A stretch of 64,000 bases of DNA from Laetmonice hystrix (GCA_965235115.1 OZ249445.1:19158001-19222000); one strand, 5' to 3'; counted from the first letter of the stretch, positions 4,038 to 40,372 are shown. The notes: generated from the letters alone by a model not told the origin. Made by a program: numbers and translations.

Positions 4038-7000
4038 ATGGCAGAAAATCTGGTCACGTCATCCAATGGAATTGCCCCCCTCTTGCCTCCATGTCGGGTT
4101 TGTGGGGAGAAGGCCTCCGGATTCCACTATGGGGCAAATACATGTGAAGCATGCAAGGTAAGATCATAATGTTTGAATGTTGATAGTTATTGATAGCTTG
4201 AATCTGAAGAGGCATATTTGAAACTGAATGTTTTATATTAATGGTCTAAATTTCGTTTAAAGATATCAGGGGTAGATTTCGTGCATGATTTTTTAGGAGT
4301 CAGCAGGACTCCCAAGTTGCAAAATTTAGGAGTCTCCCAAAAAATGTGGGAGTCCAGTGGATGTAAAAAAAAGTTTGGCATAAACATTCAAGTAATCAAG
4401 CCACCACAGAGGGGGGGGGGGGGTCTGAGTGAAACATATCAGTATTGTGACCACTGCTGAGTACCAGATATTTGGTTCACCGAGACTGGGGGATGGTCAC
4501 CTAGTCGTCGGTTAAAACCTGCATCAATCTGTGTGTAAATATTTTTTGGGTCACTGTATTACTTGCTAATGACATTTTACCTACCAGAAAAATAGCACGA
4601 CACCAAGGTTTTAAAGGTTACCTTTTAAAAGGTAATACACCACTTAAACTAATGGTAAAATTGCTTGATTGTTTATGATCATTGTTACCTGAAAAGTCAA
4701 AGGTACCGAGGCAAGAATCACTTATAACTGCTTTAAAAGGTGTAAAATGCTCCAAAAATATTAAGGGTGTAAATTTCTCCAAGTCAAAGGGATGAATAGC
4801 TCTTTCTTAGAACAAGACAGTCCCACATTAAGACACACACATCCGACTGTAGTATCAAGTTCTTGCTGACAGCACTTCCGAGTACTAGCAGTACATGGTC
4901 TTCCGCCTACTCAGCCCAACAGAGGTGTATAGGAGATGCATCCTAGTTTCTCCCCTCTCATTAAACCTCGGAAGAACGCTTTCTGAACTTAATGACCCCA
5001 AGACAGAACTGGCACAGATGTAATTTAAGGAAATGTTTACATTGTTTCAATGGTGGCACACACATTGACGTAATCTTTGCTATGACTCACCAAGGCTTGG
5101 TCCGTCTTCCCTAAACAATGTCTGTTTCCATGGGAAAGCAGTCAGTTTGTCCATAGTCAGATCCGTTATCTGATGTGTTATGACTCTGTTTAAGAAAGTG
5201 GCAGTAAAAATTATCATGAGGGTATATTTAGAATTGTAAGTTATGACCCCTAATCAATGTTTACTGTGATGATATGAAGGGCCTGTAATTAAGATATAAG
5301 TTTGGTCTGGTGACCATAGACACGATGGCACAAATTGTTGCTTGAGTGACGGGAGGGCCATGACGCCATTTAGATTTCTCTGTAGGGTTAACACAGGTTT
5401 GGCAGACCAGATGCACTTCTCTTCAACAAAAATTCTTATGACTGAATTTGTTAAGTGGTCATAAGGTTAACATCCAGTATCCTTAACCAGTATGACTCAA
5501 GAAACCAGAAGTGTCTGACCTTTGGACTTTGACTCACTAATCCTGAAGATTCAAATATGCAACTACTGGGCTCTTTCAATGTGAAGGAATGGATTGCTGC
5601 GACCAAGTAATAGCTTTATTGTATGACCAAATGGGTAATCACTTCATGGGTTTATGGTGAAGGAAAAATTAAAATAGGGAAATGAGGACACTGATAGCCT
5701 GCTATCAGACTCTCCCACCCACACAGACAAGACATGCCCGAGTGATGATCAGTGCCTTAACTCTTAGTGTAAACAGGAGCTGGCCACCACACTGACAACA
5801 TGGGTGATAGATCAGCCCCTACAGTTCCATTCCATGACCATATCATTCCTTGATGTTATAACAGTCAGTTTATATTTGGATAAAATATTCACTGAATTGA
5901 TCCAGTAGGATTAACACGTAGTAAAGCACTCGTATTTGATGGAAAACATTCTTTTTGCATTATGTGCAAGTCTTGTGTGAAAGATACCGTCCATCCAACA
6001 AATTTGGTCTAAGAATTTTTAGAATGACCAACAAATTTCTAGAATGACCATTGTATCAGAACAACAAAAAGTGGTTTTATATGTATAAGGTTTTAGATAG
6101 ACCTCAACTAGCAGGAGCTAGGCCTAGAATGTGGTATTGTTCAGGAAAATTTTTTATGCTTCTTTACCTTACTATTGTACATTGCATTCTTCGAGTGACA
6201 TCTTTCACAAATAACCATTTGTCCATTTCAGGGTTTCTTCAGGCGCAGCCTGGCGAGAAAAGCAGACTACATGTGTGCAGCATTAGAAAACTGTGAAATA
6301 CAGCCGGGCAGGCGAAGTATATGTGCCTTCTGTCGCTACCAGAAATGTTTGGCAGTGGGCATGTCTAAAGAAGGTACATTGGTTAAATACCAATCCTGTG
6401 GCTATATACCATGTTCTTGTGTTTCCAATGGTAACTTCTAAAAATTAGATGACCAAATTCAAGAAGACCTTAAACTTAACACCTCCAGTTATATTTTTAA
6501 TTTTTATTCCTTATTTCCAGCAATAAAAACAGGTCGCTACACACATGAAAAGAAAACTCGAGACATAGAGGAAGTGAAACGGATACAGAGAAGAGAGGCG
6601 GTCCAGAATTCCAAACGTGGGGTCAAGAGTCCCGAAGAGAGGGAAGCAGAACTTGAAAAAATCATTAAACACATCACGGCTGCACACCTGCAGCAAACCC
6701 CTCACTCTCCAGACTTCTTCCAGAAACTCCCCGAACGCGAAGCAAAATATCTGGTACGTCACCAGAAATAATCCATGCTCTAATCCACTGGTGGGATATC
6801 TTGAACTTTTTTCAGTGGTGCAAGGGAGAAAATTTTGTGGGGGAAAAAGCTAACAGTTATATTATGGTTAAGAACCCTGTTACCATAATCTAGGCTCTCT
6901 CAAGAACTTGTAGAGTCTCTGAAGAATGTACACAGCACAGAACAGTAGCTTCACTTACAAATGTTCCCAAGGAATGACTAAAGTATTGGAACTCCTGGCA

Positions 7001-9915
7001 TCTATCTGAAGTTGCCTCGGGATATCTTTGGTTTAGCAGAAGTCATTGGTTACATGTGTTGCAGGAGAAGCGAGCCCTTCAGGAAAGGATGTTCGGCACG
7101 ATGAAGCCAATCCCAAGGGAAGAATACCAACAAATCTACCAGTCCACAGGCATTGACATCGATGGTCGGCGAGAGATGATTTCACAGATGATACCCTGTA
7201 TAGAAAAGGCCATCAAACGCTTCATTGCATTTGCCAAAGCATTGCCAGGATTTAAAGACCTTGCTATTGAAGACCAGATTGCACTCATTAAAGGTTAGTT
7301 CCATCACAGAGGGAGCAAGACAAAAGAAATAAATATATATCATTGGAAAAAGGAAAATGGAGGGTTGAAAGCCCGAAAGAGAAGGCAAAAAAGTATTCTT
7401 TGCCGACTTAGTGACAATTTTGATATAAGATCACATCATATAACCATGTGGTGCTCAAGACGCACTTCGCAGTTGCACTGTATAAGCAGTGGTGTTACAT
7501 ACCCTGGAATTGCATGCGCCCTGATTGCATGTGACGAATTAAGGTGCCTTAAGGCGCCCACCCATTAGTTTCATGGTAAAGTTCTCTGTCTGTCCTTGGT
7601 TGAATATATATTTTTTCCTGGGAACACTAAGAGCTTTACAATCAAAGAGGCCATGGGTGATTGGGAGTCTCAAAGGAGCTGGTAATCTACAGGTTTCGAA
7701 TAACTTGATTTTATCAGTTTGGTGCCAGTAATGGTTGATCTAGGATATACAGATAACCATGACAAATTCTTCAACCTAAAGGAATCTATCCATCCTGAAC
7801 TCTATTGCCACTCCATACTCTGATTCGCCAATTACCCACTGGCTCGTCTTAACCTGATGAATTCTTTGTAGGACAATCTTTAATAAGGCCCCCGCCCCTT
7901 CTCGAAAATTTACTCCATTGATGGTGACGAAAAAGGCAGACGTACAGTCACCTATGTAGGATGCATGGCGACCCATAAATAATGTGTTAAAACCAGATTT
8001 GGCCTTTTCCACAACGAAAGTGTGGCGGCTGCTGCTGCATCTAGTGCATTCGGTTATTTCAAAGCTTGGACGGCCATTGTAAGTGGAAGCTATGCATGGA
8101 GGCAATCAGAAAAACCGGTGAGCATTTTATCATAATAGCAAGCATGAAAGTATAGGGTTATTTGAGGATCTCGAGGCTTTCAGCACAACAAAACAATGTC
8201 AGCTGAGGATTTGCTTAAAATCGAATAAAAAATATCATCAGTTAACTTGTAGTAAGAAGTTAAAAAAGGGAATCTGTTCATTTCTCACACTTTGTTGATT
8301 TTGTATCTGACATGGTTTGGTTGTGCATTATTTTAAGGAAAAGTTTTAATCAAAACGTCTATCATCAGAGAACATAATAAATGGATAACAGTGGCCTTGA
8401 AATAACATAAATAACATAAACTAGATATGTTAGCGTCTAAAGAATTGCTATTTTGAGCACATTTATTTGGTCACTTGTAAATAGATAATCATGTGCTTAT
8501 TCTGTTAATACTGTAATAGGTATCTCAATCAGGGATTTCTATGTTGCGTTTTTAAATTCACAAAAGTTTTCTTTAATTGCTTACCATTAAAATTCTCTTC
8601 TAGTTTTATTTTATTTATTTATTTTTTATTGCCAGGGGGTGGGGGTGGGGGGGGGGGGTAAAAAGGATTACATGGTATCGGCAGATTATGCCTTTTAAAT
8701 CTGGGTAATTAGGACCGATATATAGTGAGATTGGCCTTCCAGCTTTGAAATACGGTACTAAATGCAATCGATTAACTTCGGCTTTTCATGCCTCTGCATG
8801 CTTTTCCCTCTTTTTTTAAACAATGCTTGAAAGGTATTCTCTAGTACTCCCACATTCCTTTACTTTACATTCCCATTAGTTAAGGTTCTAATTTTTAACC
8901 TATTTTGTGCCAGTTTGGTCCTTACTTAAAAGTTTTAAAATTAATTTAAAATTAAAATTAAGAGAGTCAACCCCTCAATGTTTCTTGAACATAACCAAGT
9001 TAGATTTACTCTAGCGTTAGCAATAATAGGTTCTCTTTGCCCCTACTGAAAAGTACTGAACATTTGATTTTGTTGCTATTTTTCAGCATCACGGTATGAC
9101 ATCTGGGTGCTCACCCACTTCAGGTCATTCAACGTCAAGGAACAGCTCTACTCGTCACTTGAGGACTCACCGAAGGAGACCATCAGCATTGATGAATGGT
9201 CGAGCATCATGAGTCTCGAGTATCTGATTGATCTGTTTCGATTGGTCAAAAAGGTGCAGCAGCTGCAGCTGGTAGAAGAGGAGGTGGCCTTGTTGAAAGC
9301 ATTTTGTATCTTCTCACCAGGTACCATCTTTCAAACATGATAGCTGAAGACGAGGGGGTCCGGGGTGGCGCAGTGGTTAGAGCATAGGATCTTGATTAAA
9401 CACCATTAAACACGAACTACTCACTCGCCCACACTCACCCACTCGCTCTCTCATTGAAGACGATAGCTTGAAATTATGTTTGTCTATTCGTGAACCTGGT
9501 ATCTTTGGACCACTGATATTTGACTTGGTTGAAATTATGGTTTAGGATGGAGGGATATGGCTACATCTCATGTGGAAATAGAAATGTTATTGTAGTTCAA
9601 TGTAAAGACCTGTAGGACTGGGTCAAAATGGAAAGAACTATGATTGAAGTGTTATTTCTTTCTTCAGATCGGTGTCAAACCAGTGAAGGGGCCAAAAAGG
9701 TTGAGTTGAAACAGAGCGAGATTATTGACTGCCTGGACTTGTTGTTCCGTCGGAACCACCCTAAACAACCAATGTTGGTGCCAAACACCATCCACATCCT
9801 CACACAGCTGCGCACATTGGAACACATTCAGAGGAAAGAAATTAGCCAAGCATTCAGTGACTTTGAGACGGTTGAATTCCCCACACTCTTTTTTGAACTG
9901 ATGAATGCGTTATGA
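4038..9915 (+). CDS. Nuclear receptor, NR1-like (invertebrate-expanded type); isoform using LBD cassette A, 401 aa, 6 exons
   Basis: Exons 4038-4157, 6232-6373, 6521-6753, 7065-7293, 9087-9320, 9668-9915, all GT-AG and phase-consistent (1206 nt). C4 zinc fingers [22 protein letters not shown]|GFFRRS...[17 protein letters not shown]; [15 protein letters not shown]; LBD signature [24 protein letters not shown]; AF-2-like PTLFFELM. The exon may start at acceptor 3996 in frame, so an upstream coding exon is possible. Confidence 0.92.
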
Positions 9916-10673
9916 AGGGCCTACAGATTTCTGCCGTAACTTTGATGTGGATAAATACAGGGAGAGCCAATGGGTTTGTAGGGGTATGAATTTGCAGCCA
10001 GTTGTGCCAAGAGGCAGTACACTGTCCCGGTAACTCCTGGAAGGAAGTCTAGATTTACAGCCAGATTTTTGTACCTAACTTAAGAAAAGGTGCTGTTGTA
10101 GTTGTCTTTAATTTGTAAGTGCTCTTCGTGTGTATTTCCTGCTTGTTCAACTGAATTTGCGATTATAAAAAAGATAGAATATTGTTAATTATTTCGGTAT
10201 TTTTCAAGCAATTATTGTAAATCAGAAAGGTGCTAAGCAGTGAGGCAAAACAGTGTAATAGGTCTACTATAGAATTGTTATCGCCTTCGGCACTTTATTA
10301 TCATTCCAGTCCGCTAGCCACAGTAATGTAACTATATATTTTTATTAAGGTTAGATAGAAAGACTCGTACGTATGACCAATGGTGCTTCTACTTGTATAA
10401 TGCCAAGATCAAAATAACTCCAGTGTATTCAGATATATTATATAATGAGATACCCACAGCTTGGCATTCTCACCACTTTCGGAGGTTGTTTTTTTACTTG
10501 TGTTTCAGCATTATGTATGATATCTTTGGAAGTCTTTATAAGACATCAGAGAACACAGAATGAAACCGGTATCTCTAAAAGTTTAGATTTATATGTCTAA
10601 GGCCCGGCCTTACTATGGGGAAGGCATGGCATTGCTATATTGTTTGGATATGACTCGATTTTGGGCATTATCC

Positions 10674-10978
10674 ATGTTGTTTTTGGGGGTGGGGGGAGTG
10701 ATCAGATGCCTCCAGAATGTTGTGTTTGGGTGGGGGTGGGGGAGTGGTCAGATGCCTCCAGAATGTTGTGTTTGGGTGGGGATGGGAGGAGGGATCAGAT
10801 GCCTCCAGAATGTTGTGTTTGGGTGGGGGTGGGGGAGGGATCAGATGCCTCCAGAATGTTGTGTTTGGGTGGGGGTGGGGGGAGTGATCAGATGCCTCCA
10901 GAATGTTGTGTTTGGGTGGGGGTGGGGGGAGTGATCAGATGCCTCCAGAATGTTGTGTTTGGGTGGGGGTGGGGGGAG
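10674..10978 (+). repeat. G-rich 46-47 bp minisatellite, ~6.5 copies
   Basis: Unit GATCAGATGCCTCCAGAATGTTGTGTTTGGGTGGGGGTGGGGGGAGT; CAGATGCC recurs at 10703, 10749, 10796, 10842, 10889, 10936. Confidence 0.95.
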
Positions 10979-12691
10979 ATTTGTTGAATGTCAAGCAAGA
11001 GAAAACTTGGCAGTATTTGATCTATTATTGATACAACCTACCTGATGCTACATGTACTTAATTTGACATCTGATTTGCACATCAGTCATTTACGAACCAG
11101 TGCGTTGATTATCTTTTATGAATTGTATTTGATGGTACATACCAAATCGTATCACACTTAACACTTTCCACTTTTATACGTAAACATAGGTAACACAAAA
11201 ATAGGTTTTCATTGTTGGTCATTTCTGATCCGTGATATAGAGGTGTAATCATGTGAGCCAGTGAGTCTGGAAAAGATTACCCGGTAATAGATTAAGAATC
11301 TGTAATTTTACACCTTGAATGTAACAGAGATTGCCTCCATTTACAGTATCAGTCCTACTTGTTTGCCAAAGATTATCATAAAGAATATTTAAAACAGTCC
11401 AATTTTCAAAAGCATTTGAAGTGACGATACAATAAATGTGGGTCATGTATATTTTTATAGCCATGTATTTTTACAAATAAATTGCATTGCCCAGCGTATG
11501 CTCAAAAAGTTGCAACGTTATTTAGTCTCTGTCAAACAGGCCTGCTCTATGTTTAGGAACCTTATGTTGCTGCATTTCGTTAGCTTGAGGAGAGACGGTT
11601 CCACCCTATGTAAAGGCTACAGTTGCTGGCAGGGCCTAACCCCCTTACTCTGTTACGTGCTTGCTCATTTTCCGCATCACTTGCGTTGATTCCATTCTGG
11701 CATGCAACTTTATTTGTAGCGGTACTTTAGGGTGTGGCTAGAGTAGGGCCAACACCTCGACAAGTATGGAAGTAATGCTTGGTTCTTGATGCTTGGATAG
11801 TGGGATCCAGGGTGAAAAGTGCAGAAGATTCATGTGGTTTTGTCTTGTGGTTATGGCTGGAATAGTATGGTAGAGTTGCTTGTCATTGCTCGTATTGGTG
11901 CCTCCTGGCAGGTTCAAGCACCCCCCCCCCCTCCTTATTCACTAAAGTAGAGACTGTGGACGAGCTTAGGTTCCCCCCCCCCGACCAATAGCTTGTAGCT
12001 ATGTCTGCTGTGATTCAGGGAAAACGCTCATCTCTTATTGAAACTTAATCAAAAAGTAACCAGAAGTAAAAGTAAAGTCGTTTCTCATCTTCATCACACA
12101 TGGACTGAATAGGTTGAAGTATAAATATTTTCGCCCTGAGGATGGCCAACAGTTGTCCGTTCACTCAATGTCAGGACACCGTGGGAAAGATGACCGGGTC
12201 ACCTACTTAAGGGATCCTCCCTCACACAGGTAGGGGTGCACAGTCTTGACCTTTAGCCTTGCACCAATACATGTACTGCCATTTAGTTTAGGATCTTCAT
12301 TTCTTTCTGAAACCAACAAACTTTTAAAAAACAGTAATACTAGACATACTATATAGCATCCTTTTCTACGCTTAGGCTCCCCTTGTCGACAAACTTAAGA
12401 ACCCGTAGGCACTATCTAAAGTACACCTAGTACACTGATGTGGGATGCCCCAAAGGGAATCTATGCTACACCTCGGTTTGTTGTAAGAAAAAATTTATTT
12501 TTGAACATGGGCATAAGGGAAAAACCAAAGTATATTTTGAAATTGAAGTGGTGTATTTTTTTCATTGCTTTGAAGACTAATCTGCTTCTATACACTTATG
12601 GCTAAATTGCTCGATGGTCTTGTTCTATTTGGTTCAAACTTTCTGGATCAGAAACATAAAAACATAGAAAAACAATTCCTGCTTGTTTAAA

Positions 12692-13117
12692 ACCCATCAT
12701 GATCATCTCTTGTTTCAGTGACTCCAAAATGAAGACGTTGGCTGTTGGGTTAGATAAGGGCTTAGACTACATAAATCTATACATATATACCAGCAGAAAT
12801 CGAGAAATCGAAAGAAATTCAATATTTCAGTTGCCCGTTGGCGCCATGAAGCGATCGTTTCATGGCTGGTTGTTGACCTGGTAGTGACTTGAGCAGCCAA
12901 TGAAATTCATCGGTTCGCCAATGAATCTTGGCTGTTAAAGCCATAAGCCGATCGCTTCATAGAGACAACAGGTAACTGGAGGAATGTGGAATTTCATTAG
13001 ATTTCTCCATTTCTGTGGGTGTACATTTATTCAATTATGTAGTCTAAGGCCTTATCTAACCTAAAAGCCAATGTTTTCATTTCGGAGTCATTGAAATGAG
13101 AGATAATCGTGACGGGC
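12692..13117. mobile_element. Foldback-type MITE (long imperfect inverted repeat)
   Basis: Left arm cccatcatgatcatctcttgtttcagtgactccaaaatg... matches the reverse complement of the right arm ...catttcggagtcattgaaatgagagataatcgtgacggg, with CpG-type decay. Confidence 0.75.
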
Positions 13118-13744
13118 TAAGGTTGTGTTAACGTTCCAATATAGGCCTACAATCATTAAATGAAGAATAAGAAAGCACTATAATAGCACTATAAGTATAT
13201 AATCCCTATTAGAACCTGATATTTGTTTAAAGCCTCAAGCAAAGTACCAGTACCGTTGCTTTATGACTGACAATGACTGCTTTGCTTTGTGATAATGCTT
13301 CCACCCCAGCTGCAATATCTTGGGTCTCCTCTTACCTCGCCCAGACCCATCCAATGCAAGGCAACTGCGAGTGCAGAGTGTTTCGGAAATGAAGGAAAAT
13401 TACTTTTTGATATAAAAAGTGACTTTAAATGCCAAGATGGTTTTCATTCAGTGGGAGGAGTTGGACTGCCGTCCTTCAAGTACCAGTAGTAGATTGTCAT
13501 ATTTATTTTTTTGCTTTTTAATAAAAATTAAAAGGTGGAGCTCCGTATGACATTTCGGGGTCTTTTTCTCCGTGATTAAATGTAGGTTTTTAGATTGGTT
13601 ATGCCGGTACCAGCAAAGGACAGTGTTTTATATATATTATAATTAAATACAGATTGTGTTAATTGGGTGAAGTACCTATTCTGTGCTTATTTCAAAGTTT
13701 TATTTATGCCTTTTATCCTAACGAGCAAATTTCTTATTTTTCAG

Positions 13745-14663
13745 CTGGTAGATTTGAGACATGGCTTTTGGCCCAACATCGAGCTGTTAACGTGGAGCAA
13801 AGATTATTCACAGTAATCTGTGGGAAAACGTTACATCAGGATGACATGAAGATGATCAATGATGACATCTTCATTGAAGAGTTCTTTCGTGGCTGTAGCA
13901 TTCTGAAGAGGCTTCACCTCCAGGTGCCAGAAATTGGACTGCTACAAGGGATTGTTATACTGTCTGCAGGTAAGGCACTGATTCTGAAAGTGGGGGTGTT
14001 TCCCCTAAGTGACCAATGTAGTGTAAGTTACTGGGACTTTAATTTCGCAGGATTAAGATTTGGCAATTTATAATTTTCGCATTGTTTATTGTTTCTTAAA
14101 TTAACGTTTTGGCAATGACACTCTTGTTAAAAAGTGAAAAACATATATTAAATTGAAGTTTCATTTCACCACCAGCAAAAAGAACTTAGAATAGTTAATC
14201 ATATTTGAGGCTTGGAACAGTTGGTAATAATGGAATAGATCCACAGAATTAAGTTCCAAGTTTTTTAGTTGGTGTTTCTCTATATATTTTTCAATACGTT
14301 TCGCTCTCAATCCCTCTCGATCTCTCAACAAAAGCAAATTTAAACACTCTAAATACACAAGATCTTCAATACGCATTTATATGTAGTATTTAAAAATGAA
14401 TGCTGTGCTGTTTTCTTCATGCAGACAAGGTTGAAGTGTCCAATCCCGAGAAGGTGGAGGAATACCAGATGACCCTGGTGGAGGCCCTCAAATACTGGTT
14501 AAACAAAACCAGACCAGACGACCCTCACATGTTCCCCCGGTGTATCACAGCTCTGGCTGAACTCCGCCAGGTCGCTCGCTGTCAAAAACGTTCAGAGGAA
14601 GTACTGGAAAATTTGGCTGGGCTAGACGTGCCTCCCCTTCTCCTGGAAATGTGGTCGTCATAA
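13745..14663 (+). CDS. Nuclear receptor LBD C-terminal cassette B (two exons, approx. helices 5-12); no own DBD or LBD N-half found
   Basis: Exons 13745-13969 (phase 1-1, AGRFETWLLAQHRAVNV...EIGLLQGIVILSA) and 14425-14663 (DKVEVSNPEKVEEYQ...VPPLLLEMWSS*). Homologous to exons 5-6 of the upstream gene with identical intron phases; open frame and canonical splice sites. Confidence 0.85.
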
Positions 14664-17600
14664 AGGGGGGGGGGGGGAGATATATTCAGGTCACAGTTTG
14701 ACAGGTTACGTAGAGTTTGATCAGCATTGGGTGCTTTGATGGCTCATCTCAGCTCACCAGATTTTTGTACAGTTTTAGAATGTGTAGAAAAGTCATTGAA
14801 CGTTAAAAGACGAAACTATGTATTTACATGTCCTTTTCTAAGCTCAATACAGTATTTGGCACTAAGTGCATCACATTGTTTCATGCAAAAGTAAATGTTG
14901 TTGATGTAAGCATTTGTCTATCACTGTAAGCATTTGTCTATCGCTGCTAGAAATGGGACCAAAAATACATTTTCCATCATTATTGTGTCCACCCGTTTGC
15001 ATATCACACACATGAAATCCCAGGCCAAAATATTTTTTTCACGGTGGCAAGTTTTTATTTTTACATGTATGGCGAGAACAAACATTTTTTCTGCACCTCC
15101 GCTGAAAAGAAGTTTTGAAGTTTAAAAACCATAGCCCCCCTCGGGTATCCAATGATCTACCCCTAAGGTGACTGGACTTATTGGTCTGTCAGTGTTACCA
15201 GATCAAACCAATCTGTTTTTAATGATTCATTGAATTATTGAAGCATAAAGTCACGATAGTGTGCTGCCTCAACTTTCATAGAGAGCAGAGTCTCTGAGAT
15301 GTCACGATCAGTGAGTTTTGTAAGTCGTTAAATTAGCAAAAATCTTCTAATTGGTTTTATCGACAAAGAGACTAGAACGTTTTACTACGGTGTGTAACTT
15401 ATTATTTTAAATGCTGTAAATTGCTTTTGCCGCCAGTAATTACCGTAGTAATTAAGTATGGCAGGTGTATAAAACAAGAAGACAATTTTGGTGCAAAAAT
15501 AGCTTTGTTCCTGGTTAATTAAAAACTCGAAAATGTGATACCATCAAGGCTTAGCAAGACAGATTTTTTAAAAGACCACAGCTATTCTAGTACTTTTACC
15601 TAAATCTATTGAGCCATCGGTTGTATTCTCTGAATGTACAATTAACTTGTTCCATCGACATGTGATGTCTTTCACCGTTTTTCTTCGAAACACTCTTTGC
15701 ATGAATGTTTTAACACAGTGAAGTGCTGTTGATTGATTGATTTTCTAATCGATATTTGACGAGAAAGTTTTCCCCTATAATGTTGGTTGTATTATATTTT
15801 ACCTTTGGACATGAAAAAGTTACATTGTTTATTATTAACCGGTAGATTATTGCAGTTATTATACATGTATTACAAATAATGATGGAAGAAAGTAGTGGGA
15901 TATTGACTTACATATATGGTTGGTCTTAGTTTTGACTATAGATGATCAGCAAAAATGGCTAAATACTATGTTGCTTTGCCAATGTTTTTACTCACTGTAC
16001 ATGTATTAAGTTACAGGCTGGTCTAAGTCAAAATAGTAACATACGGTATGTCCATTTTTGCAGCATGTTGAAAGTAATAAGTTTTTCTGCTCTCCCATTT
16101 CATGCTGCAAAGTGATTTGTCTGGTTTGTTATTCGAAAATGTCAAAAATACTAGAAAGAATCTAGTAGTACAGTGTTATCTATATTATGTTGATGAGTTT
16201 AGGGGATGCAGTTCCTGTCCAGTGTATTTAAGTTCTGTGCGTTTTTCCAGAATGATTCTTTACATTCTACACAAAGCTTGTACGTGTATGTGGTTAGAGC
16301 CTTGAAAGATGAAGTCTCCAGTAAAAAGCACTTCCGACAGCTCTTTACATATGAAATAGATCAGTTATTGGGAAAAATCGGTAAAGATGAAAAAAGGAAT
16401 AATATTGGTTGATATGTTTGTACCATTACTCCCCAACATGATAATGCTGTATAGATAGAAAATGAGAATGCTTTTACTCGAGTACAAAGAAGATGCAGCT
16501 GTGATAAAGTTTTCGATTTTCATCGTTCTTCAAAGACCAACAATTCGATCCTACCAAGGGTCCAGTTTATATGTTTATATATACTGTATGCCTGTTAATT
16601 GCTTACAAATATACATACCGGTATATAGATATACTCATGAAGACCATTCTGCTCTGCATTCAGCAGGTTATATAGGTTTTAGGTTGACCTTTGCAATTTG
16701 AAACGTGGCACTTCTACAGAGGTTAGAATCAAACACGTGATATTAATATATCAGTGCTTACGTGTCTGTTTCATGTGAAAAATCCTTTCGCCTTAACGTT
16801 TCGCTAAGACACGAAGGTCATAACGGTCTGTGACCAAGGCAAGACGACTACGTCTATAAGTAACATTATAATGGAAGTCATTTGGCATAATCTACTCAAC
16901 TACATGTACTTGTACCTTAGGGATATATATTACTCAAGAGTATCGCTGGCAATACTGTTTTATTGGATCGATAGAAAGGTCATTTAAGGTACATGTCCTA
17001 ATGTAATGCTAATTTTGCTACTTAGACGATTCAGGATTAAGGTGTAGATGGCCATTTAAACGAGCCGCCATATAATTGTAAACCCAAAGGCAGTATTGAT
17101 AATAAAAACTACTTTTCAGTTTCTGTTTCTCATGTACTGTATGTATGAAAATATTGAATTACTCTAAAGGTGGACCCATGCAATTAAGGCTAACCCAGCG
17201 TCGTTAAATGTTGTTGCTACATGATTTTATTTTAAACTGAATGGTCTTAAAGGTAATCGATCACCCTACGGCCTCCGATTTTGGCGAAGCGCTGTCCCCA
17301 TCTCCTACGAATCCGCGTATTTCAAGCTTACCTGATCTTGAATTTATCCCACTGGACTGATAAAACATTCTGTCGTATCCATAACATTGTTGTGCTAGGT
17401 CTATTGTTGATTATGAGCCATAATGAGGCGATACGTCCCATATTTTTCATCTCAATGGACTGAGAACCGAGAACGACCGCCATGGCCGCGTTTGCATTGT
17501 CAGGGCGGTCGTTACTAAGCAACGGGATTGGGCGCATGCGTTGCCTCGCACTGCTCCGCCCGCCCTCCCCCCATAAACCAAATAAGGGCATGATTTGATT

Positions 17601-18336
17601 CGCGTGCTCTCGTCTCTAGTCAAATAGGTAACGCTTAATTGATTAATTAAAAATATTGTCGATATGGACACGCCATGGTACCAGACTGCTAGAAATCCCT
17701 TAAAATAATTGTTTTTACTCAAGTTTTGTTGAATTGACTGCGTTTATTTCAATTTTCGGACAGATCTCCTTTAGGGGAAACTGAGTATTGAGATTAGGCC
17801 TATCATTGCATAATTTCAACTTTTAAAATTACTCTTTGCTAAGGTTTACCGCGAGCAGATAAATTGTACTGGGAAAATGAATCTTGGGTGGATGGAATCA
17901 GGTGGGCGTGTGATTCTGAGGATGTGGACTAAAATAAAATGACGATTTGCAATATAATACTGAGAATCCATCCCCGGGCTATAATCTATAAAGTATTGTT
18001 GTTGTAAGAGGTTCTTTATTTCGAGGAATTTCATGTACCCCCCGGTACATAATAATAAAAGTTCGGAGAGAGGAAACCAAGGAGGGCTTAAATATTATAC
18101 GTAATATGTCATCCGAGAAACAATATTATACAAATATTGTACAGATCTAATCAAGATCCGCGTTGTACAGATCTGATCCGCTCTGACGAGTTGCACAAAA
18201 AGGACACTTGCAAAAGAGAAAAGAGGACTAGTGTTTCCGTCCTGAAGGTGACCAACATTATTTGGGTAGAATCATAGCTGTGTGCCAAAATTTATACTGT
18301 GTGCCTAATGTTTATATTTTGTGTGTGTGTACCTAG

Positions 18337-19176
18337 CTCACCGGCCCGACCTGTGGCTGCTGGGATCACACCGGGCCGTCAATGTGGACAGACAACTGTA
18401 CACGAACAGTGAGGGAACCACCATCGGTGTGGACGATTTGCTCAAGGTGCACGGCGAGCTGTTTGTTCACACACTCTTCCGAGTGTCCAGAATCCTCCAA
18501 TCACTTCACCTCCAGGTTCCCGAGATCTCCCTCCTCCAGGGAATCTGTTTGTTCTACACAGGCAAGTTCCGTGTTTATAACTATTTGAAACAAAAAGATT
18601 CCTTAGGTCTCTTGTCATTTAACTGCCCCCCCCCCCCCCTCAAGAAAAAAATGGATTGCCATTGTATCTCGAGATGTTAACATAATATAATTTAAAAGTT
18701 TACTCTATGATTTGAGGTTATAAATATGTATAGCGTGACTCGGTGAACTGATACCAAACCAGAGAAATAAACTCGCTTTTAATAACAATTCATTTTATTT
18801 TGGGCCTGCATTCTTACCACTGATGTACATTAAGTGGTCTGTGGAAGTTTTAGAAGCACATGACGTTCACGTTTTAATATTCAGAACCGCATAATTCATA
18901 GCATTAACAATTTACATCCACATGTCTTGTCCTGCAGACACCGTAGAGCTGAAGAATCCGGAGAAGGTGGAAGAATGTCAGATGTTATTAGTGGAGGCCC
19001 TCCGTTACTGGCTGCATAAAACCCGTCCAGACAACCGCTTCATGTTCCTTTACTGTATCCACGCCCTGACCGAGCTCCGCGGGGTGGTCGAGTGTCAGGA
19101 GAAACTACAACACATCTTGAACACTTTCGATGGATTCAATATCCCGCCGCTAGTTCTGGAGATGTGGTCCGCATGA
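18337..19176 (+). CDS. Nuclear receptor LBD C-terminal cassette C (two exons); GC-AG intron
   Basis: Exons 18337-18561 (AHRPDLWLLGSHRAVNV...EISLLQGICLFYT; donor AG|GCAAGT) and 18938-19176 (DTVELKNPEKVEECQ...IPPLVLEMWSA*). Same exon lengths as cassette B (225 and 239 nt); first exon 35/75 aa identical to B by manual alignment. Confidence 0.85.
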
Positions 19177-19339
19177 GGCTAATCTCACAGCACGCTTCGG
19201 AACAGTGTAAGAGATGTAAACGATAAGAAATGGATAACTTTCCTGAAATCATGTTGTTGTATTAGCATTCTGAAGTCCCATGAAATCCCGGGAAGGTATT
19301 TCAGTCCAAATATGTTAACAGGACCTTACGATATAGGTA

Positions 19340-20318
19340 CAGTGGTCCCCCTGTTAAAGACCACCCCTTATAAGCGACCGCATTTCCACTGCATTAACCA
19401 CTTCACACTATAATTCCACCCTTATAAGCGACCATCCGGCACTAACGACCAGCGACCGGCATATCACTGCATCAACTCCACTGATCACCCCTTATCAGCG
19501 ACCAGCCTTTGAGAATCAGTCAGCCGTGGCTTGTCATAACACTGTTGTCTCCCCATGCCCGGCTGCCTGGCATCCTGCCGACCGAACACAAACACACACC
19601 CCCCCCCCCCACACACACACTTCCATCCCAGCATGGCCGGCCACGTGTCTCACCTTGCCCACCCGACTTCCATCACATGGCCCCACCACAGCTGCTAGGC
19701 CCAGTCTCTCACCTTCCCCGCCAGGCTTCCATCACACATTAAGCTGACGGTTTTGCTCCCCCTCCTACTACCATGCCTGTTGAAAAAACGGCATGCTAAA
19801 AGAAGAGTCTAGAAAAGCCGTAAATGAAATGAAACAGACAAGACTAGGGTTTTTCTTTGAGTAAAACTAAATATTTTTGTCTTTCTGAACTGAAACCGTG
19901 CCATATTTTAGACTTTGCTCTGCCACAGCAGTATACTCAGATGCTGGACTGCATTACAAACTGCAAGACTTGCTAAAAGAAGAGTCTAGAAAAAGCAATA
20001 AATAAAATGAAACAGACAAGACTAGGGTCTTTCTTTAAGTAAAATAAAATATTTTTTGTCTCTCTGAACTGAAACTGTCATGTTGTCATGTGGGAGGGGT
20101 TATTTGGCAAGAATAACTCCATACCTGCCCCCCCCCCTCTTTGTCCCTCCCTCTAACTGGGAAGTCGCCACCTAGTGTTAACTGTGTGTAGTTATCTCGC
20201 ATGTCGCCACCTGGTGGTAACCATGTGTACTTAACAACCCCTCGTTTAGGCGACCACCCGCCACTAGCGACCACTTTCTCTCTGCAGCAGGGGTGGTCGC
20301 TTATGAGGGGGACCACTG
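19340..20318. mobile_element. Non-autonomous Tc1/mariner (pogo/Tigger-like) element, TA TSD
   Basis: TA|CAGTGGTCCCCCT...AGGGGGACCACTG|TA; repeated TAAGCGACC subterminal motifs; internal ~110 bp direct duplication (~19793 and ~19972). Confidence 0.85.
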
Positions 20319-25139: not shown

Positions 25140-28100
25140 ATGTCGCCGGATGGTACGAAATGTGTGAACTCTGACGCCAACGGTTCGCAAAAAGGAAGTC
25201 CGCGTATGGGGAACGAACCTCATGATCATACAAGCCATCACAGCCTCATGCCCTCACCGCCATCTTCCAAAGACGTAGAATTCCCAGGGTCGGATCTGCC
25301 CAATAAGTTGTCGCTGACAAACGCCGGCGTCGCGTTCGGTTCGGACGCGCCGTTAGACCACAGTGCCGCCAAGTTGTTCCCAGTGCCCCCTGACGGCGGG
25401 TACGGCTGGGTGATCATTGTCGCCTGCTTCCTCTGTAACGCCATTGTGGAGGGAACGGTCGGCTCCTTCGGAGTGTTCATGCCACACTTGATGGGGTATT
25501 TTGGAGGGAGCCAAGGGAAAATGGCTGTTGCGGGGTCTGTGCTCATTGGAGGATTCCTAGTCTCAGGTATATAGCAATAACATGTCTTTGCATTCGTGAT
25601 TCGTGATAAAAGAAATTAATAAAATTGACTATGCATTAAAAAAGTGTCGAACAACCCAAAGGGAACCTCAGAATTGAAGCTTTCTACAACATTTCACTAT
25701 TATAGGCAGGTTGTAGTCAGTTATTATCTCTATCATCTATGTGAAGATGTGTCTTCGATAAGCAGAACACAGATATACCGGATGCAATCGGCCTATTGTT
25801 TCTGACATCAGGGCCCATTGTGAGCGCTCTGGTGAATTGCTTCGGCTGTCGCGTGGTAACAATGAGTGGTGCTGTTATCGCCTGTGTCGGATTCGTTCTC
25901 AGTACCCTGGCGCCTTCTGTCAACGTCTTCATTCTATTGTATGGGGCCCTTGGCGGTAAGTCCTCTGGTAATCGTATTACATGTGTATGTTTCCGGAAGT
26001 ACTTTCATGCTGGTACACTGGGGCCCGTCTTACTAACGTAGGTCGCCGCAATATCGCCGTCAAAGTCGCCAAATTTGTTGTTATTATGTATTGACTGGCC
26101 GTTTGGCGATGTCGCCGTTCGTCCAGGAATATTAAGACGGGCCCCAGATTCTCCACACCCTTTTACGTCCTTGCTTACATGGTTGGATACCCCATACGTG
26201 GTGTAGCATGATAGTTGAGGGCTGACCTTGCTGCTCCAAAAATGACATAACTTGATTCGCTTAACTGGTTTTGATGAATTAAAGACTATTTTTCATGTAA
26301 AAGATTCCCGTTCAGGATCTGGAAGAACATAGATTCTGAGGTTGCTTGGTTTCGTCTGGACGTTTTTGGGGGACACCCTGTATTATATGATATTATATGA
26401 TATTATATTATGTTATGTTATGTTATGTTATGTTATGTTATATTATGTTATGTTATGTTATGTTATGTTATGTTATGTTATGTTATATTTTAAACTTTGC
26501 ACAGCTAAGCAATCTGATTGGTCCATATGTACCACGTGACCCTCCCGAAAATAAGATAGACCTTGGCTCTGAAAAACCATATCAACGTCAAAATAGAAAA
26601 AAAACGTCACGATATGGGACGGATTACTTGACCCAAACATGTATAATATAGCAAAAGTTGTATGGCAGCTCGTGCACTATACAGTTTACGGGACTACGAA
26701 AAGCGATAATGGACTCGCCTTTGCCTCATTCATTATCACTTTTCCCGCGAGTTCACGACCGTCACCTCAACAACATGCAACTCCAGCTGTTGCATAGATC
26801 CATGTATAGCTTATAATCAATTATATGGTAAAATACTTTTATGCATGGTGGTACGCTACTGGGGCCTGTCATAAAGCCTAGCCTAATTGTAGAATTGACT
26901 CACGCTTTTGCCACTGAAAGTTACGTGCAATAATTATGAACGATTTACATCCAATAAAGGTTCGTCTAGGGGAGTCGTATAAATTAACCTACATTATGTA
27001 TCCTCAGTGTCAATTTAAGCCCCCTAACTTTACGATTGCGAATCTACCCATACAGTGTTCATATATTTCGCTATCAATTTGTCCTTGACCCGTTTGTCTG
27101 CTGTGTTGTTGCCAGGGCTGGGAGTCGGGATGCTCTACCTGCCTGCTATGTTGATGGTCGGGTTTTACTTCGAAAGGCGGCGGTCACTGGCGACGGGAAT
27201 CGCTTACTCCGGGGCGGGGATGGGCATGCTTGTCATGGCGCCCACCTGCGCCACACTGCTCTCAGTGCTGGACTGGAAGAACTCGCTGATCCTCCTGTCG
27301 GGATTCGTCCTCCAGGGTCTAGTGCTCGGGGCCCTGATGAGACCTCTCCAGCCGCAGAACGATGAAAGGGACGTCACCGGCCTGGAGACGACGCCCAGCA
27401 CGGAAGACAACAAGGATCTGGTCAGTGAACAAAGTTTCCGGTCCTCTAGGGACGCGGCGGACGATTGCAGGATGGCAGTCGACATTCCGCAAGGCACGTT
27501 TGGGGAGTCACGGTGTAGCAGCTATTCCAGCGCAGTCAGAGCTGTGGTCGTCACTGATGTAATAACTAGGCCGGCTGTTAAAACTCAATCACTCAATGTG
27601 CTTTCTGTGAAAGCGAATAGTGCATTTCCGAGGCTCATTGAGACAGAACCCCCGGGAAACACATCAGTGCAGGCCACCCCTTTACTGACAGAATCATGTC
27701 TGGAACTCCCCAGTGACCCTTCATCCCGCAACCAGAGACTCCACGCGCACAAAAACATCAGGAACCATCTAGATTCGGGCGCGAGACAATACGGCGACGT
27801 CCGGTTCGTGTCATACAGCGAGCTGGCCAGGGTGTGTGAGGACACGTTCAGCCAGATAGACCTGGAAAAACTCAAGACCGAGATGTGGAAACCTTTAGCC
27901 CGGCGTGATATTTTCTACTCCGGCAGCGTGTCCAGGCTGCCAGAGTTCCAAGCTCAGCCCGACATGGCGTCGTACATTGCCTCGGTGACGATGATTCCAG
28001 TGGAGGACCTCTCAAAATCCGTGTCCTCCCGCTGCCCCTGCCTCTCCAGGAGCACCTTGGCCACCTTGTACGAGATGATCGACGTCGCCATTCTAGCCAA

Positions 28101-30597
28101 CCCGTATTTTCTGATCATATGTCTTGCTAGCATCTTCATCCAAGTGGCCTATTTTGTGCCCATTGTCTTTGTTCCTGTTTTTGCAGCCAGTCTCGAAATT
28201 GACCCTGAGAAGGCGTCTATGTTAATCTCGGTTATAGGTAAGCTCCTCGCCTGCCGCACATTGTCAAAATTTTGGCCATCTTCGACCAACTTTTAGTCGG
28301 GAACCAGTCGTGCAGTTGGTCCAAATCGTAGCCCATTCGAAAAACAAATCGGGAGCCAAGCGGCTCGGTTGCAGTTGACCACCTGGCCAATCACCGTACA
28401 GTATTTGATCATGTGAGGATCGCACCGATTCCCGAAACACCCACTAGGTTCGCATGATCTCTTGGCGTGAATCGGCGCCTGTTCTACCGCACAGGTCATA
28501 ACAGTGTGCGAGCGCAGTTGGCGTTGGCTCCAGTTGAGTTGGCTCGGTCGGCCAAAATCATGATAATGTGCGGCTGGCTTTGGGGTTTGTCCATAAAAAT
28601 ATTGGAATCGCATCGTAACTGCAGAGTATGGAAATGGCGACGGTGTATGCGTGTTGCCATTGGTGTGAAATCCAAGCATTGGTCTGTTCGGTGTATGTGT
28701 GTGTTTGCGTGCGGGAGAGATGGAGAGAACAAGCATATTGAAGAATAGTTGAATGCAGTGATGGAGATAGCGAGTCTCCCGGTGTTATTTGAGATGGATG
28801 TTTATCTTAAAATATAAAGACTATGTTGATGATGTGCCTGTGTCCAGTTTCTTTACCTCTATACCTGTAGGTGTTGCCAACACGGTGGGCCGTGCCGGGG
28901 CGGGGTGTTTGGCCAACATCCCACGCGTTCACGACCTTCACCTCAATAACATATCACTCATCGTGTCGGGAATCTCAACCATCGCCGTCGTTTTCATCTG
29001 TAACTCGTTCACGGCTCTAGTTGTCTATGCCGCCATCTTCGGCATGTTTATCGGTAGGTGGCCACCGATCCAGGCTGTATACGTTACTCTTCTTCTGCTC
29101 CACTGACTTTGCAGTACTTCATCTTTAATGTTTCTGTTAAGACTTGGGTTAAAGGGGCATGCTATGGAACACGTTTTTTTGGATTTCCGGCAATCCAACA
29201 TGACCGTGTACTGGGATCCAAGTAAATAATCCTACCACAGCATTTTGTCTCCGACGTGTTTTCGCTGCGTATGCAGCACAAGTAGGTTCTATACGACCAA
29301 ACCCATAGATTTCTCCCGATAGCACATCTCCCGCCATAATTTGACAACCTCCCATCAACCCGTGTAATTGCATACTGTGTCACCTCCTGCGTGTGGACTC
29401 TCTGCATGTGCTTAGTCACGTGCTTCGTTTAGTTGTAAACAATTCATCAGTTGCACTCGATCGTCTGGCATCAGAATGCCACCCAAAATATTTTACGAAA
29501 TCGGCAGAGAAGCAGGCAAGGGAGCTTCATAAACTTCGATTTCTCACGCAAAATGAAACTGATAAGTCTGTCTTTGTTTACCAAGCAATTTTAATGAAAG
29601 ATCTCTTTATGAAAACAGGAAAAGTTCTTTAAAATACAGATTTTTCACATTTCCTCATAATATGCCCCTTTAAGTGTTTCTGCATATCATGACGAGCTCT
29701 CTAGCTGTCCATGACAGTTGACAAATAATCTCCTTTATGATTGTAGCTGCCTTTGTGCCTTTGACTACCATTTTCCTCGTGCGATTCCTTGGCCTCCATC
29801 GCCTCAATAATGCCATGGGTTTACTCTCCATGGTGCGAGGCCTGGCCTCCATGGCAGGACCTCCTATAGCAGGTAGACAGTAGAGGGCATAGTCTCGGGG
29901 AATTGGAAAGCTGGAAGTCACTAGGACCAACTCGGGCGAGACAAGCTGGCGCTAGTTGACGGTCTGGTGCTCCTGTGAAAATAGTTTACGATCCATTTCA
30001 TTCATACAAATGTAAAGGTTTCATCTAAGGTTGGCCTCCAGGTCTGTTTATAGTATACCTCCACACAGATCATTCATACGAATGTAAACCGTTTCTTCTA
30101 AGGTTGGCCTCCAGGGGTGCGTTTCACAACCTGTCGTTAGCTTGTCTTATCGTTAACACCAATGTATTTTCAATGGGGATTTTAACGCACGACAGGATAA
30201 CGATGGTTGTGAAACGCACCCCAGGTCTGTTTACAGTATACCTCCACACAGAAAGCGCTGGAATATCAATATTTTATCACAAACCAAATTTTGCGGCGTT
30301 GCTCTTCCAGAATTTTCAGGTATCTGCATGGCAACGCCGGTTTAAATGGTAAATTGATGAAGCATCGTGTAATGGAATGTACAACTACCTCATTCAGTGA
30401 TGAACTATTCTCTGTATTTTCTTTTCGTTTTGCTTGTAGGCGTTCTCCTGGACAAGTACTCGTCGTATACAATTGTGTTCTCCTTTGCGGGCACCATGTT
30501 TGTGATGGCAGGCTTGACCTTCTACCTACTGCCCATCTATCACAAGTGGAATATCGCACGGGGACAATCTGCCGTGCTAAAAGATCCCGCATGGTAG
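25140..30597 (+). CDS. Monocarboxylate transporter family (SLC16/MCT, MFS), long-central-loop invertebrate type, 719 aa, 6 coding exons
   Basis: Exons 25140-25566, 25812-25955, 27116-28237, 28871-29053, 29747-29872, 30440-30597 (2160 nt, phase-consistent). Motifs PPDGGYGWVII, GPIVSALVN.FG.R, YFERRRSLATGIAYSGAG, RRDIFYSGS, GPPIAG.LLD. Confidence 0.93.
26020..26145. mobile_element. Short Harbinger-like MITE
   Basis: TIR GGGGCCCGTCTTA...TAAGACGGGCCCC. Confidence 0.6.
26385..26487. repeat. (TATGT)n microsatellite
   Basis: Directly visible pentanucleotide run. Confidence 0.95.
29153..29669. mobile_element. Kolobok-like non-autonomous element, TTAA TSD
   Basis: TTAA|AGGGGCAT...ATGCCCCT|TTAA in SLC16 intron 4; superfamily assigned from the TTAA target and AGG termini only. 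Confidence 0.65.
30115..30221. mobile_element. 107-bp PIF/Harbinger-type MITE with CAG TSD
   Basis: CAG|GGGTGCGTTTCACAACC...GGTTGTGAAACGCACCC|CAG; an uninterrupted copy of the target (GGCCTCCAGGTCTG) is in the adjacent duplicate at ~30033. Confidence 0.85.
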
Positions 30598-39800: not shown

Positions 39801-40372
39801 ACTGTCTTTGCTCTGTTAAAGTGTGCCATTTCAAAAAGCGACATGAAATATGGCATGGCTAATTTCTCGACAAATTTTCAGGATCTCCCAAAGGAGGTTC
39901 AGAGAATTGCAAAGTTTCTTGGCATACCGTGGACCGCTGAATTAGCGGCAAATGTCGCCAACGCGGCCAACTTCAATCAAATGAGAAAAAATCCTTTGGT
40001 CAGCTATGACTCCTTCCACGACAGTGTTAACACCAACAACACCAAATTTATACGAAAAGGTACGGCTTTACAAGTTTGTTCCTCAGATTCAAGAGGATAA
40101 TATCTTGCAATTATCTTTAATTTCAAACATAAGCGGTTTTTAAAAAATTTAAACCGAAATGATTTAATGATAATATGCGTTGTGGATATTATACACTGCA
40201 AAGAAAAATAAGCGTTTGCAATAGACTTATTGTAGTTCTCTTTCCTTGTTCTGTAGGAAAGATTGGCGGATGGAAGGCAAGATTTTCAATCGACGATAAC
40301 GAACTCTTCGACGAGAAATATGAAAAGGCAGATATGAAGACTTTGGGACCTGAATTTACATTTTCGTTTTGA
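33868..40372 (+). CDS. Cytosolic PAPS-dependent sulfotransferase (SULT1-like), 312 aa, 7 exons
   Basis: Exons 33868-34039, 34386-34523, 38174-38283, 38560-38689, 39682-39776, 39882-40059, 40257-40372 (939 nt). Motifs RPDDIFIVGYPRSG (5'-PSB), RIYHSHL (catalytic His), RNGKDVAFS (3'-PB), YGSWFDHVRDWW, RKGKIGGWK. Confidence 0.9.
34641..37157. mobile_element. CACTA/EnSpm-like non-autonomous element with nested MITEs, in SULT intron 2
   Basis: TA|CACTGAAAAAATCAAGCTC...GAGCTTGATTTTTTCAGTG|TA; subterminal AAACTTGTCA/TGACAAGTTT repeats at both ends. Confidence 0.75.
35658..35820. other. Assembly gap (163 N) flanked by an inverted repeat
   Basis: N run; AGGCCAGTTTACACCCCGG..GGCCAGAACATA on the left and its reverse complement on the right. 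Confidence 0.98.
37352..37549. mobile_element. Harbinger-like MITE
   Basis: TIR GTTGCATAAAAAATCCCCGCC...GGCGGGGATTTTTTTATGCAAC; termini resemble the 30115 element. Confidence 0.7.
37858..38122. repeat. 44-bp minisatellite, 6 copies
   Basis: Unit AAATATCGCCCTCATGCATGCAGTAGCCACTATATGATATTATT, ending ~50 bp before the SULT exon 3 acceptor. Confidence 0.95.
38910..39017. mobile_element. Unclassified small hairpin element
   Basis: TGTGTT..CCCCAGATCACAGC..GGACC...GGTCCGAACGCTGTGATCTGGGGTAACACA inverted repeat. Confidence 0.5.

Follow-up and report, generated by a model that had tools for sequence, protein, structure and literature searches.

The usual view is that nuclear receptors diversify when whole genes are duplicated, the domain for DNA binding (DBD) and that for ligand binding (LBD) evolving together. 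Can a single receptor gene carry several versions of part of its LBD? This question is raised by a gene in a 64-kb stretch of the Laetmonice hystrix genome (OZ249445.1:19158001-19222000), called the window below. The window is AT-rich animal genomic DNA with a GC content of ~0.4 and a single run of N (35658-35820), and its + strand bears a nuclear receptor gene in which four shared 5' exons are followed by three 3' cassettes, A, B and C. An earlier examination of the same DNA, the sequence-only reading, had proposed that the cassettes are spliced alternatively to the shared exons. We find that alternative 3' cassette splicing onto the single shared donor is very probably the best explanation of the locus. 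Within a single gene, part of an LBD seems to have been copied more than once and then kept over a very long period.

One donor and three terminal cassettes

The shared exons e1 to e4 encode the DBD, the hinge and the first helices (H1 to H4) of the LBD (Table 1). The zf-C4 matches on e1 and e2 jointly span positions 2-70 of the Pfam profile, giving the C4-type two-zinc-finger DBD of the nuclear receptor superfamily. We re-derived the end of the shared part from the sequence and found it where the sequence-only reading had put it: ...IALIK+G at 7293, in phase 1. This end, ...LIK|G, is common to 25 relatives. The P-box (4098-4115, in e1) is CEACKG and not the canonical CEGCKG of the NR1 subfamily. 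It recurs in the homologues L005, L007, L008 and L023 and is kept in all homologues read; in a literature search, the string CEACKG turned up in one paper, which gives it for the second DBD of certain rotifer receptors of the 2DBD type. Judging from this motif, the DNA half-site preference of a CEACKG receptor may be non-canonical.

Each of the three cassettes consists of two exons. The first two bases of every cassette complete an alanine codon begun in e4 (G+CA or G+CT), the internal intron is in phase 1 in all three, and the frame stays open to a stop right behind the motif of activation function 2 (AF-2). The predicted spliced products of e1-e4 with A, B or C have 401, 395 and 395 amino acids. 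Three two-exon terminal units with equal phases, no internal stops and AF-2-like ends had been described before, as had the three product sizes, and the spliced reading frames confirm both. Because a stop closes every cassette and no common downstream coding exon exists, the locus is not an internal mutually exclusive exon cluster of the Dscam or FGFR2 type.

How similar are the cassettes? B and C align without gaps and are 46% identical in the first exon and 53% across the whole cassette; the earlier description of the pair as intact and divergent stands, with its ~47% for the first exon slightly corrected. Identity of A to B or C is 24-29%. In cassette-to-cassette tblastn, B and C found each other at E values of 1e-17 to 1e-28, and A found B or C at 1e-2 to 1e-9, which speaks for homology and against a chance resemblance. 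At the DNA level, the terminal exons of C and B (C2 and B2) are 71% similar over 156 nt.

We wondered whether B and C have 5' exons of their own. A tblastn search with the three products (word size 2, E<=10) revealed no second DBD, hinge or H1-H4 exon in the 64 kb, and the six-frame translation of the window, searched without filters (--max) with a profile made from 25 homologues of e4, contained no second e4-like exon. Searched with one profile for cassette first exons and one for cassette second exons, the window gave exactly three matches to each and hence no fourth cassette, and no other nuclear receptor was detected there. By tblastn and profile, in the window and in the orthologous loci described below, the cassettes lack 5' coding exons of their own within the available sequence. 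The sequence-only reading had seen no DBD, hinge or H3/H4 exon in the spacers and had suggested tblastn of exons 1-4 against them; the observation holds for the whole window, and the search, run in whole-window form, returned no extra copies.

Table 1. Exons of the receptor gene in the window and their counterparts in the contigs L026 and L024 (ERZ25767047) and L003 and L004 (ERZ26052287)
Feature	Position	Strand	Description
Shared exon e1	4038..4157	+	start codon, short A/B region, first half of C4 zinc-finger DBD; ATG and GT donor read directly; Pfam zf-C4 E=4e-9
Shared exon e2	6232..6373	+	second DBD half; AG/GT borders; Pfam zf-C4 E=6e-15
Shared exon e3	6521..6753	+	DBD C-terminal extension GMSKEAIKTGRY, hinge, LBD helix 1; AG/GT borders
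Shared exon e4	7065..7293	+	LBD H1/H3-H4, signature region FAKALPGF...DQIALIK; AG/GT borders; phase-1 end; only donor available to the three cassettes
Cassette A, first exon (A1)	9087..9320	+	234 nt; H5, beta-sheet, H6-H8; phase 1 to 1; strong acceptor, GT donor; weak Pfam Hormone_recep match
Cassette A, terminal exon (A2)	9668..9915	+	H9-H12; AF-2 LFFELM; stop 9913-9915
Cassette B, first exon (B1)	13745..13969	+	225 nt; strong acceptor tttttcag, donor gtaagg; phase 1 to 1
Cassette B, terminal exon (B2)	14425..14663	+	RAR-like H9-H12; AF-2 LLLEMW; stop 14661-14663
Cassette C, first exon (C1)	18337..18561	+	225 nt; GC-AG intron donor CAG|gcaagt; acceptor ..cctag
Cassette C, terminal exon (C2)	18938..19176	+	AF-2 LVLEMW; stop 19174-19176
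e2 orthologue	L026 5495-5650		aligns at DNA level
e3 orthologue	L026 6940-7173		81% amino acid identity; pN 0.13, pS 0.82
A1 orthologue	L024 4033-4266		234 nt as in the window
A2 orthologue	L024 4659-4912		ends ..FFELTNIL-stop, position as in the window
B-type first exon	L024 9050-9274		225 nt as in the window
C-type first exon	L024 17192-17416		225 nt; HRPD.WLL..HRA motif in common with C1 of the window
C2 counterpart	L024 18016-18162		aligns with C terminal exon of the window
Two-cassette region	L003 10637-13305		
Two-cassette region	L004 10635-13562		

Fold and position of the junctions

To which receptors is the gene related? A phmmer search of the PDB with the full-length single-cassette homologue L007 matched LXR-beta (3e-39), RAR-gamma (3e-38) and PPAR-gamma (1e-35). 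We used a structure model of the same protein as a stand-in for the window isoforms (predicted local distance difference test score 84.5); its top Foldseek matches are LXR, RAR, VDR and Rev-erb, at template-modelling scores of ~0.7. The closest relatives are NR1 receptors by sequence as well as by structure, and we regard the gene as an NR1-type receptor on its sequence. The DBD and LBD folds match those of LXR (NR1H), VDR (NR1I), RAR (NR1B) and Rev-erb (NR1D), from which the gene differs by its CEACKG P-box and an identity of 25-40%. At this identity the best match also shifts from segment to segment: the best PDB matches of e4 are VDR LBDs, the first-exon profiles match the middle of the LBD of LXR (LXR-beta) and Rev-erb, and the profile of the B and C second exons matches the RAR LBD through to the C-terminus, RARs being the closest characterised proteins to B2 (37-43% identity). 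We claim no named NR1 group. The motif GMSKEAIKTGRY of the extension behind the DBD presumably resembles the Rev-erb/ROR/PPAR type.

In the L007 model, e4 meets the cassette at the kink between H4 and H5, and the inner cassette junction lies between H8 and H9. On this model a cassette is H5-H8 plus H9-H12; the larger part of the pocket belongs to it, as do AF-2 and the dimer-interface helices H9-H10/11. An LBD with AF-2 (hydrophobic-hydrophobic-x-E-hydrophobic-hydrophobic) is seen in the profile matches, in the model and in the three terminal motifs of the window. The junction positions bear out the H5-H12 content that had been ascribed to the cassettes. The proposal that they exchange the ligand pocket was right as to H5-H12 but incomplete, having overlooked that the dimer interface and AF-2 change too.

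Age and conservation of the cassettes

B and C could be silent relics of partial 3' tandem duplications, with the e4-to-A product the only one made. We compared them over 154 codons (462 nt). Synonymous sites are saturated (proportion of synonymous differences, pS, 0.82; non-synonymous, pN, 0.30), the three codon positions differ by 0.38/0.27/0.62, and the alignment contains zero indels. Dominant third-position differences, without stops or indels, are not the picture of a pseudogenised partial duplicate. The GC content at third codon positions (GC3) is 0.53-0.69 in the cassette exons versus a GC content of 0.32-0.41 in the flanking introns. By these sequence measures B and C are old copies kept as coding sequence. 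As a separate observation, cassette C is GC-richer (GC3 0.69, GC 0.54, versus GC3 0.49 in the shared exons and 0.53 in B), and the GC content of the window climbs locally from ~0.37 to 0.45 at 18001-20000, around this cassette.

We reached the loci of relatives through exon open reading frames (ORFs) that had been called on contigs of invertebrates within public metagenome assemblies. In ERZ25767047, the orthologous locus (L026/L024, on a 3-Mb contig) has single-copy e2, e3 and e4 and behind them an A-type, a B-type and a C-type cassette, ordered as in the window, the spacing being 4.6 kb from e4 to the A type, 4.1 kb from there to the B type and 6.9 kb on to the C type. No DBD or e4 lies between the L024 cassettes. 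Their splice sites are canonical, and their phases, first-exon lengths (234/225/225 nt) and stop positions match the window; they end in ..FFELTNIL (A), ..LILQMWGS (B) and ..LLVDMWMS (C). In blastn, the DNA of the two loci aligns in exons only, the introns and spacers being unalignable. Amino acid identity is 78% for e2, 81% for e3 and 91% for e4, and 47%, 38% and 38% for cassettes A, B and C. Synonymous sites are saturated across the whole comparison (pS 0.69-0.92); pN is 0.05-0.13 in the shared exons (e4: pN 0.05, pS 0.92) and 0.36-0.44 in the cassettes (pS 0.70-0.85). Neutral sequence could not hold frame, length, splice sites and 38-47% identity over such a distance, and the cassettes are therefore coding. 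The sequence-only reading had called B and C old and selected, a view that the gapless B-C comparison and the preservation of the array in ERZ25767047 at synonymous saturation support. It had also suggested measuring dN/dS across relatives, where a ratio near 1 would indicate recent partial duplicates; with pN at 0.36-0.44 against pS at 0.70-0.85 in the cassettes, that neutral pattern is not seen.

The closest relative is ERZ26222911, with an e4 orthologue 96% identical to that of the window. At the level of ORFs, one strand of its 569-kb contig carries the e4 orthologue, an RVT_1 retroelement and orthologues of B1 and B2. The B1 orthologue (P0144) is 69% identical and keeps the donor position; the B2 orthologue (P0027) is 73% identical, keeps the stop position and lies 15.7 kb downstream of the e4 orthologue. 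The RVT_1 ORF (836 amino acids) lies 7.8 kb past e4, ahead of the B cassette, whose exons are still intact. A 116-amino-acid ORF 2.0 kb past e4, at the position equivalent to A1, was not retrieved by the cassette profile.

A different array is present in ERZ26052287, where two haplotype-like contigs (L003 and L004; e4 ~81% identical to the window) carry e1-e4 followed by two tandem cassettes, a and b, with phases as in the window and no DBD or H1-H4 between the L003 cassettes. Cassettes a and b are 55% identical (pS 0.85, pN 0.30). Comparing the two contigs, we counted 6 synonymous and no non-synonymous differences in the distal cassette b (P ~1e-4 under neutrality). For both cassettes the count is 11 changes, of which 2 are non-synonymous (P ~3e-5). 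Many indels separate the contigs in the non-coding DNA around the cassettes. Purifying selection on the cassettes is thus seen between B and C, between the window and L024 for each of A, B and C, between L003 and L004, and in the confinement of the alignment to exons. The proximal cassette of L003/L004 has an acidic tail of ~100 amino acids past AF-2 and a branch of 0.64-0.71 versus 0.02-0.05 for the distal one, and L003, compared with L004, carries 6.3 kb of inserted sequence between e2 and e3.

Did the arrays arise together? In a tree with two RARs as the only outgroup, cassette A of the window groups with the first L024 cassette (98/99) and C with the third (86/90), the latter pair within a B/C-type clade (90/96). 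The second L024 cassette is B-like by synteny and motifs; the tree leaves its placement open. The L003/L004 cassettes are united in a clade apart (100/100), which sits on a long stem, and thus go back to an independent duplication. Terminal branches are 0.44 for A, 0.16 for B and 0.31 for C. On this sequence evidence, A and B/C are probably separate, older cassette lineages and not three recent copies, and from moderate supports and a marginal topology test an older origin of A relative to B/C is likely. The topology in question, A, B and C as one lineage-specific clade, was marginally rejected (approximately unbiased test, p=0.03), in a test that was picked after the tree had been seen and that involves a long branch.

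Further relatives carry or show less. A single cassette, A-like or B/C-like by lineage, is found in L002, L009 and L013, and likewise in L007 and L008, which are cDNA-like. L021 and L022 comprise e4 and ~2.8 kb of intron only, and L023 comprises e1-e4 and ends ~0.5 kb past e4. Searching a large protein database with e4 returned only genomic exon ORFs of relatives, all reading past ...LIKG into the intron, and the cassette-exon profiles recovered only the B1 and B2 orthologues of ERZ26222911. B2 had no close full-length protein in a library of 50%-identity cluster representatives, in which clustering could hide isoforms; the nearest full-length proteins were RARs. A metagenome scan with B2/C2 motifs gave no matches. 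The top-scoring hit of the B2 search, P0026, is no receptor but a spurious, repeat-driven match: 805 amino acids with 13 cysteine-rich repeats that share ..RPD..NPNDPH.F..

What remains of the notion of silent relics? The proximal position and strong acceptor of A, the non-GT donor of C1, and the faster divergence of B than of e4 between close relatives (69-73% versus 96% identity) speak for it. Yet the frames are open and gapless despite saturated synonymous sites, the six cassette exons are conserved islands in length, phase and stop where introns no longer align, and the distal cassette of L003/L004 has accumulated synonymous changes only. Even the donor of C1 carries the full CAG|GCAAGT consensus, which is typical of working GC-AG introns. 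Relics are strongly disfavoured, and we give them hardly any credence.

Probable use of the cassettes

The exon anatomy, the phase match, the lack of another 5' partner in the available sequence, long-term purifying selection, the conservation of the array and the independent origin of a two-cassette locus are established by these results. Purifying selection shows that the cassettes are translated; it does not show with which 5' exons. B and C might therefore belong to separate transcription units, with their own promoters and unrecognised 5' exons, and encode proteins that lack the DBD or differ otherwise. The window begins just 4 kb upstream of e1, and the spacers of 3.8 and 3.7 kb could house a promoter. 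However, there is no DBD, hinge or H1-H4 elsewhere in the 64 kb or between the cassettes of L024/L026 or L003, and the comparison with L024/L026 reveals no extra conserved island in the spacers (by blastn, which very divergent short exons would escape). Going by the L007 model and by what is generally known of this fold, a fragment beginning with H5, and thus devoid of H1-H4, would fail to make an LBD. Moreover, the acceptor phase of all cassettes fits the e4 donor in three species. We consider separate transcription units unlikely.

The cassette exons are translated, should be unable to fold by themselves and lack 5' exons of their own in the available sequence; in three species, a single phase-matched donor lies upstream of them. 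Alternative terminal cassettes explain this combination best. From these features we infer splicing of the cassettes onto e4, its exclusivity and regulation, and differences between isoforms in ligand or partner. The phase-1 donor at 7293 would be joined to the acceptor of A1, B1 or C1, a choice between alternative last exons in which the three acceptors would compete for the donor. For a distal cassette to be used, the acceptors nearer to e4 would have to be skipped and the cleavage sites nearer to e4 read through, and the choice of acceptor would be coupled to whether these 3'-end sites are used or passed. A1 comes first and is strong, and B or C can therefore probably be used only if A is repressed or the intron behind e4 is spliced slowly.

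RNA-derived sequence from relatives is in keeping with a regulated step in this intron. The contig L005 (1-1716, sample Ga0099809) lacks introns 1-3 and is thus RNA-derived; it runs from e4 into the next intron (..LIKG|gtag..) for at least 650 nt and predicts a product with the DBD and H1-H4 but without the rest of the LBD. A second contig of the same sample, L011 (1-1415; RNA or DNA), likewise reads from e4 into the intron, and the same read-through in the window would meet a stop one codon past the e4 donor. The three full receptors would have the DBD, the hinge, H1-H4 and the H3 face of the pocket in common, and would differ in the remaining pocket, in the dimer-interface helices and in AF-2.

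The cassettes could also be used in another way: their exons might be mixed, for example A1 with B2, or B and C might serve mainly in regulated unproductive splicing. All internal introns are in phase 1, hybrids would be in frame, and the up to six isoforms envisaged in the sequence-only reading are possible by phase only; the intron retention in the RNA contigs of relatives is a hint of regulated processing. Against mixing, H5-H8 and H9-H12 of one cassette are predicted to pack together in the fold, and the first and second exons of each type are still paired in both array-bearing species; against unproductive splicing, strong conservation at the amino acid level argues for a function of the protein. 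This version is, in our judgement, very unlikely.

Several observations nevertheless weigh against alternative use of three intact cassettes. The array is not universal, several of the more distant relatives being single-cassette (L002, L009, L013). The RNA-derived contigs of relatives are either fully spliced single-cassette forms (L007, L008) or keep the intron behind e4 (L005). A1 has a strong acceptor, which transcription reaches before those of B1 and C1; B and C may accordingly give isoforms that are minor or made only under certain conditions. The non-synonymous rate of the cassettes is 3-8 times that of the shared exons, which is compatible with weaker constraint. The AATAAA/ATTAAA hexamers lie 0.8-1.5 kb past each stop in the window and 37-420 nt past the L024 stops, an unremarkable distribution, and hexamers alone are weak evidence.

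Is such a locus known? In Drosophila lola and mod(mdg4), common 5' exons are spliced to many alternative 3' cassettes that encode DNA-binding or FLYWCH domains. Common 5' exons, one donor, at least two paralogous terminal cassettes, phase-matched acceptors and own stops, the features of a lola-type locus, are all found in the window, in L024/L026 and in L003/L004, as is the pattern of tandem duplication of the 3' module. The difference is that here the back two-thirds of an LBD vary and the DNA-binding part is constant, the reverse of lola, and that there are three cassettes of two exons each. In FGFR2, as in FGFR1 and FGFR3, ligand specificity is switched by the alternative exons IIIb and IIIc, from which Ig domain III takes its C-terminal half. 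As here, homologous duplicated exons exchange part of one ligand-binding domain and the rest is shared, but in FGFR the choice is between internal, mutually exclusive exons that share a downstream exon, whereas the cassettes of the window are terminal with their own stops. The analogy to lola and mod(mdg4) drawn in the sequence-only reading is close. UGT1A, which it also named, is a mirror image, and FGFR2 IIIb/IIIc comes nearer: UGT1A and the clustered protocadherins also join tandem variable exons to constant ones, but theirs are variable first exons with their own promoters joined to constant 3' exons, a reversed polarity.

Among nuclear receptors themselves, C-terminal splice variants are known from vertebrates (TR-alpha1/alpha2, GR-alpha/beta, ER-beta-cx). 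There too an alternative last exon alters the C-terminal part of the LBD and leaves the DBD unchanged, but it puts unrelated sequence in place of H11/H12, giving non-ligand-binding or dominant-negative forms; here the alternatives are complete, homologous and conserved H5-H12 units with AF-2. No relevant description came out of a literature search that paired nuclear receptor LBDs with alternative last exons and with exons that are duplicated or mutually exclusive. The kind of locus is known, and its application to a nuclear receptor LBD is apparently new.

Taken together, these results suggest that an invertebrate NR1-type clade probably evolved, at least twice, a modular design in which a DBD with H1-H4 is combined with two or three alternatively spliced H5-H12 modules, and kept it to synonymous saturation. 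The modules would evolve several-fold faster than the shared part and descend from old A and B/C lineages, the latter with a RAR-like second exon, and one DNA specificity would be coupled to several pockets, interfaces and AF-2 surfaces. If this is true, one set of target genes could respond to several signals or partners by splice choice, and invertebrate receptor gene counts and ecotoxicology screens that clone one LBD would miss two-thirds of the forms at such loci. H1-H4 would have to fit three H5-H12 partners, elsewhere two: a natural domain swap that offers a handle on contacts in the pocket, the dimer interface and AF-2. Pending confirmation from RNA, the locus should be of interest to specialists in nuclear receptors and in splicing.

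Terminal cassettes do not need docking/selector RNA pairing, and in an inverted-repeat scan of 7294-19300 nothing came up beyond one foldback element, some homopolymer G/C runs and short pairs at chance level. blastn found no intronic block conserved between the window and L024, and an Rfam scan no matches. The foldback element, at 12693-13116 in the A-B spacer, resembles a miniature inverted-repeat transposable element; its inverted arms measure 134 nt, are 81% complementary and enclose a further pair of 40 nt. The homopolymers are a G13 run directly past the stop of cassette B (14665-14677), a complementary C14 run in the internal intron of C (18626-18640) and a C11 run in the A-B spacer (11921-11931). 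They are probably noise; by their sequence, they could pair in read-through pre-mRNA. About 0.7 kb past the stop of cassette A, ~8 tandem copies of a G-rich unit of 46-47 nt (..GGGTGGGGG..GATCAGATGCCTCCAGAATGTTGTGTTT) occupy 10632-11022, which would fall in a long 3' untranslated region of A or in the A-B spacer.

The remainder of the window contains exons of neighbouring genes: a long open exon matching the Major Facilitator Superfamily (27028-28293, +), an exon with a sulfotransferase domain (39666-40097, +) and, on the opposite strand, exons with MAM domains (49438-49824, -, and 56179-56787, -).

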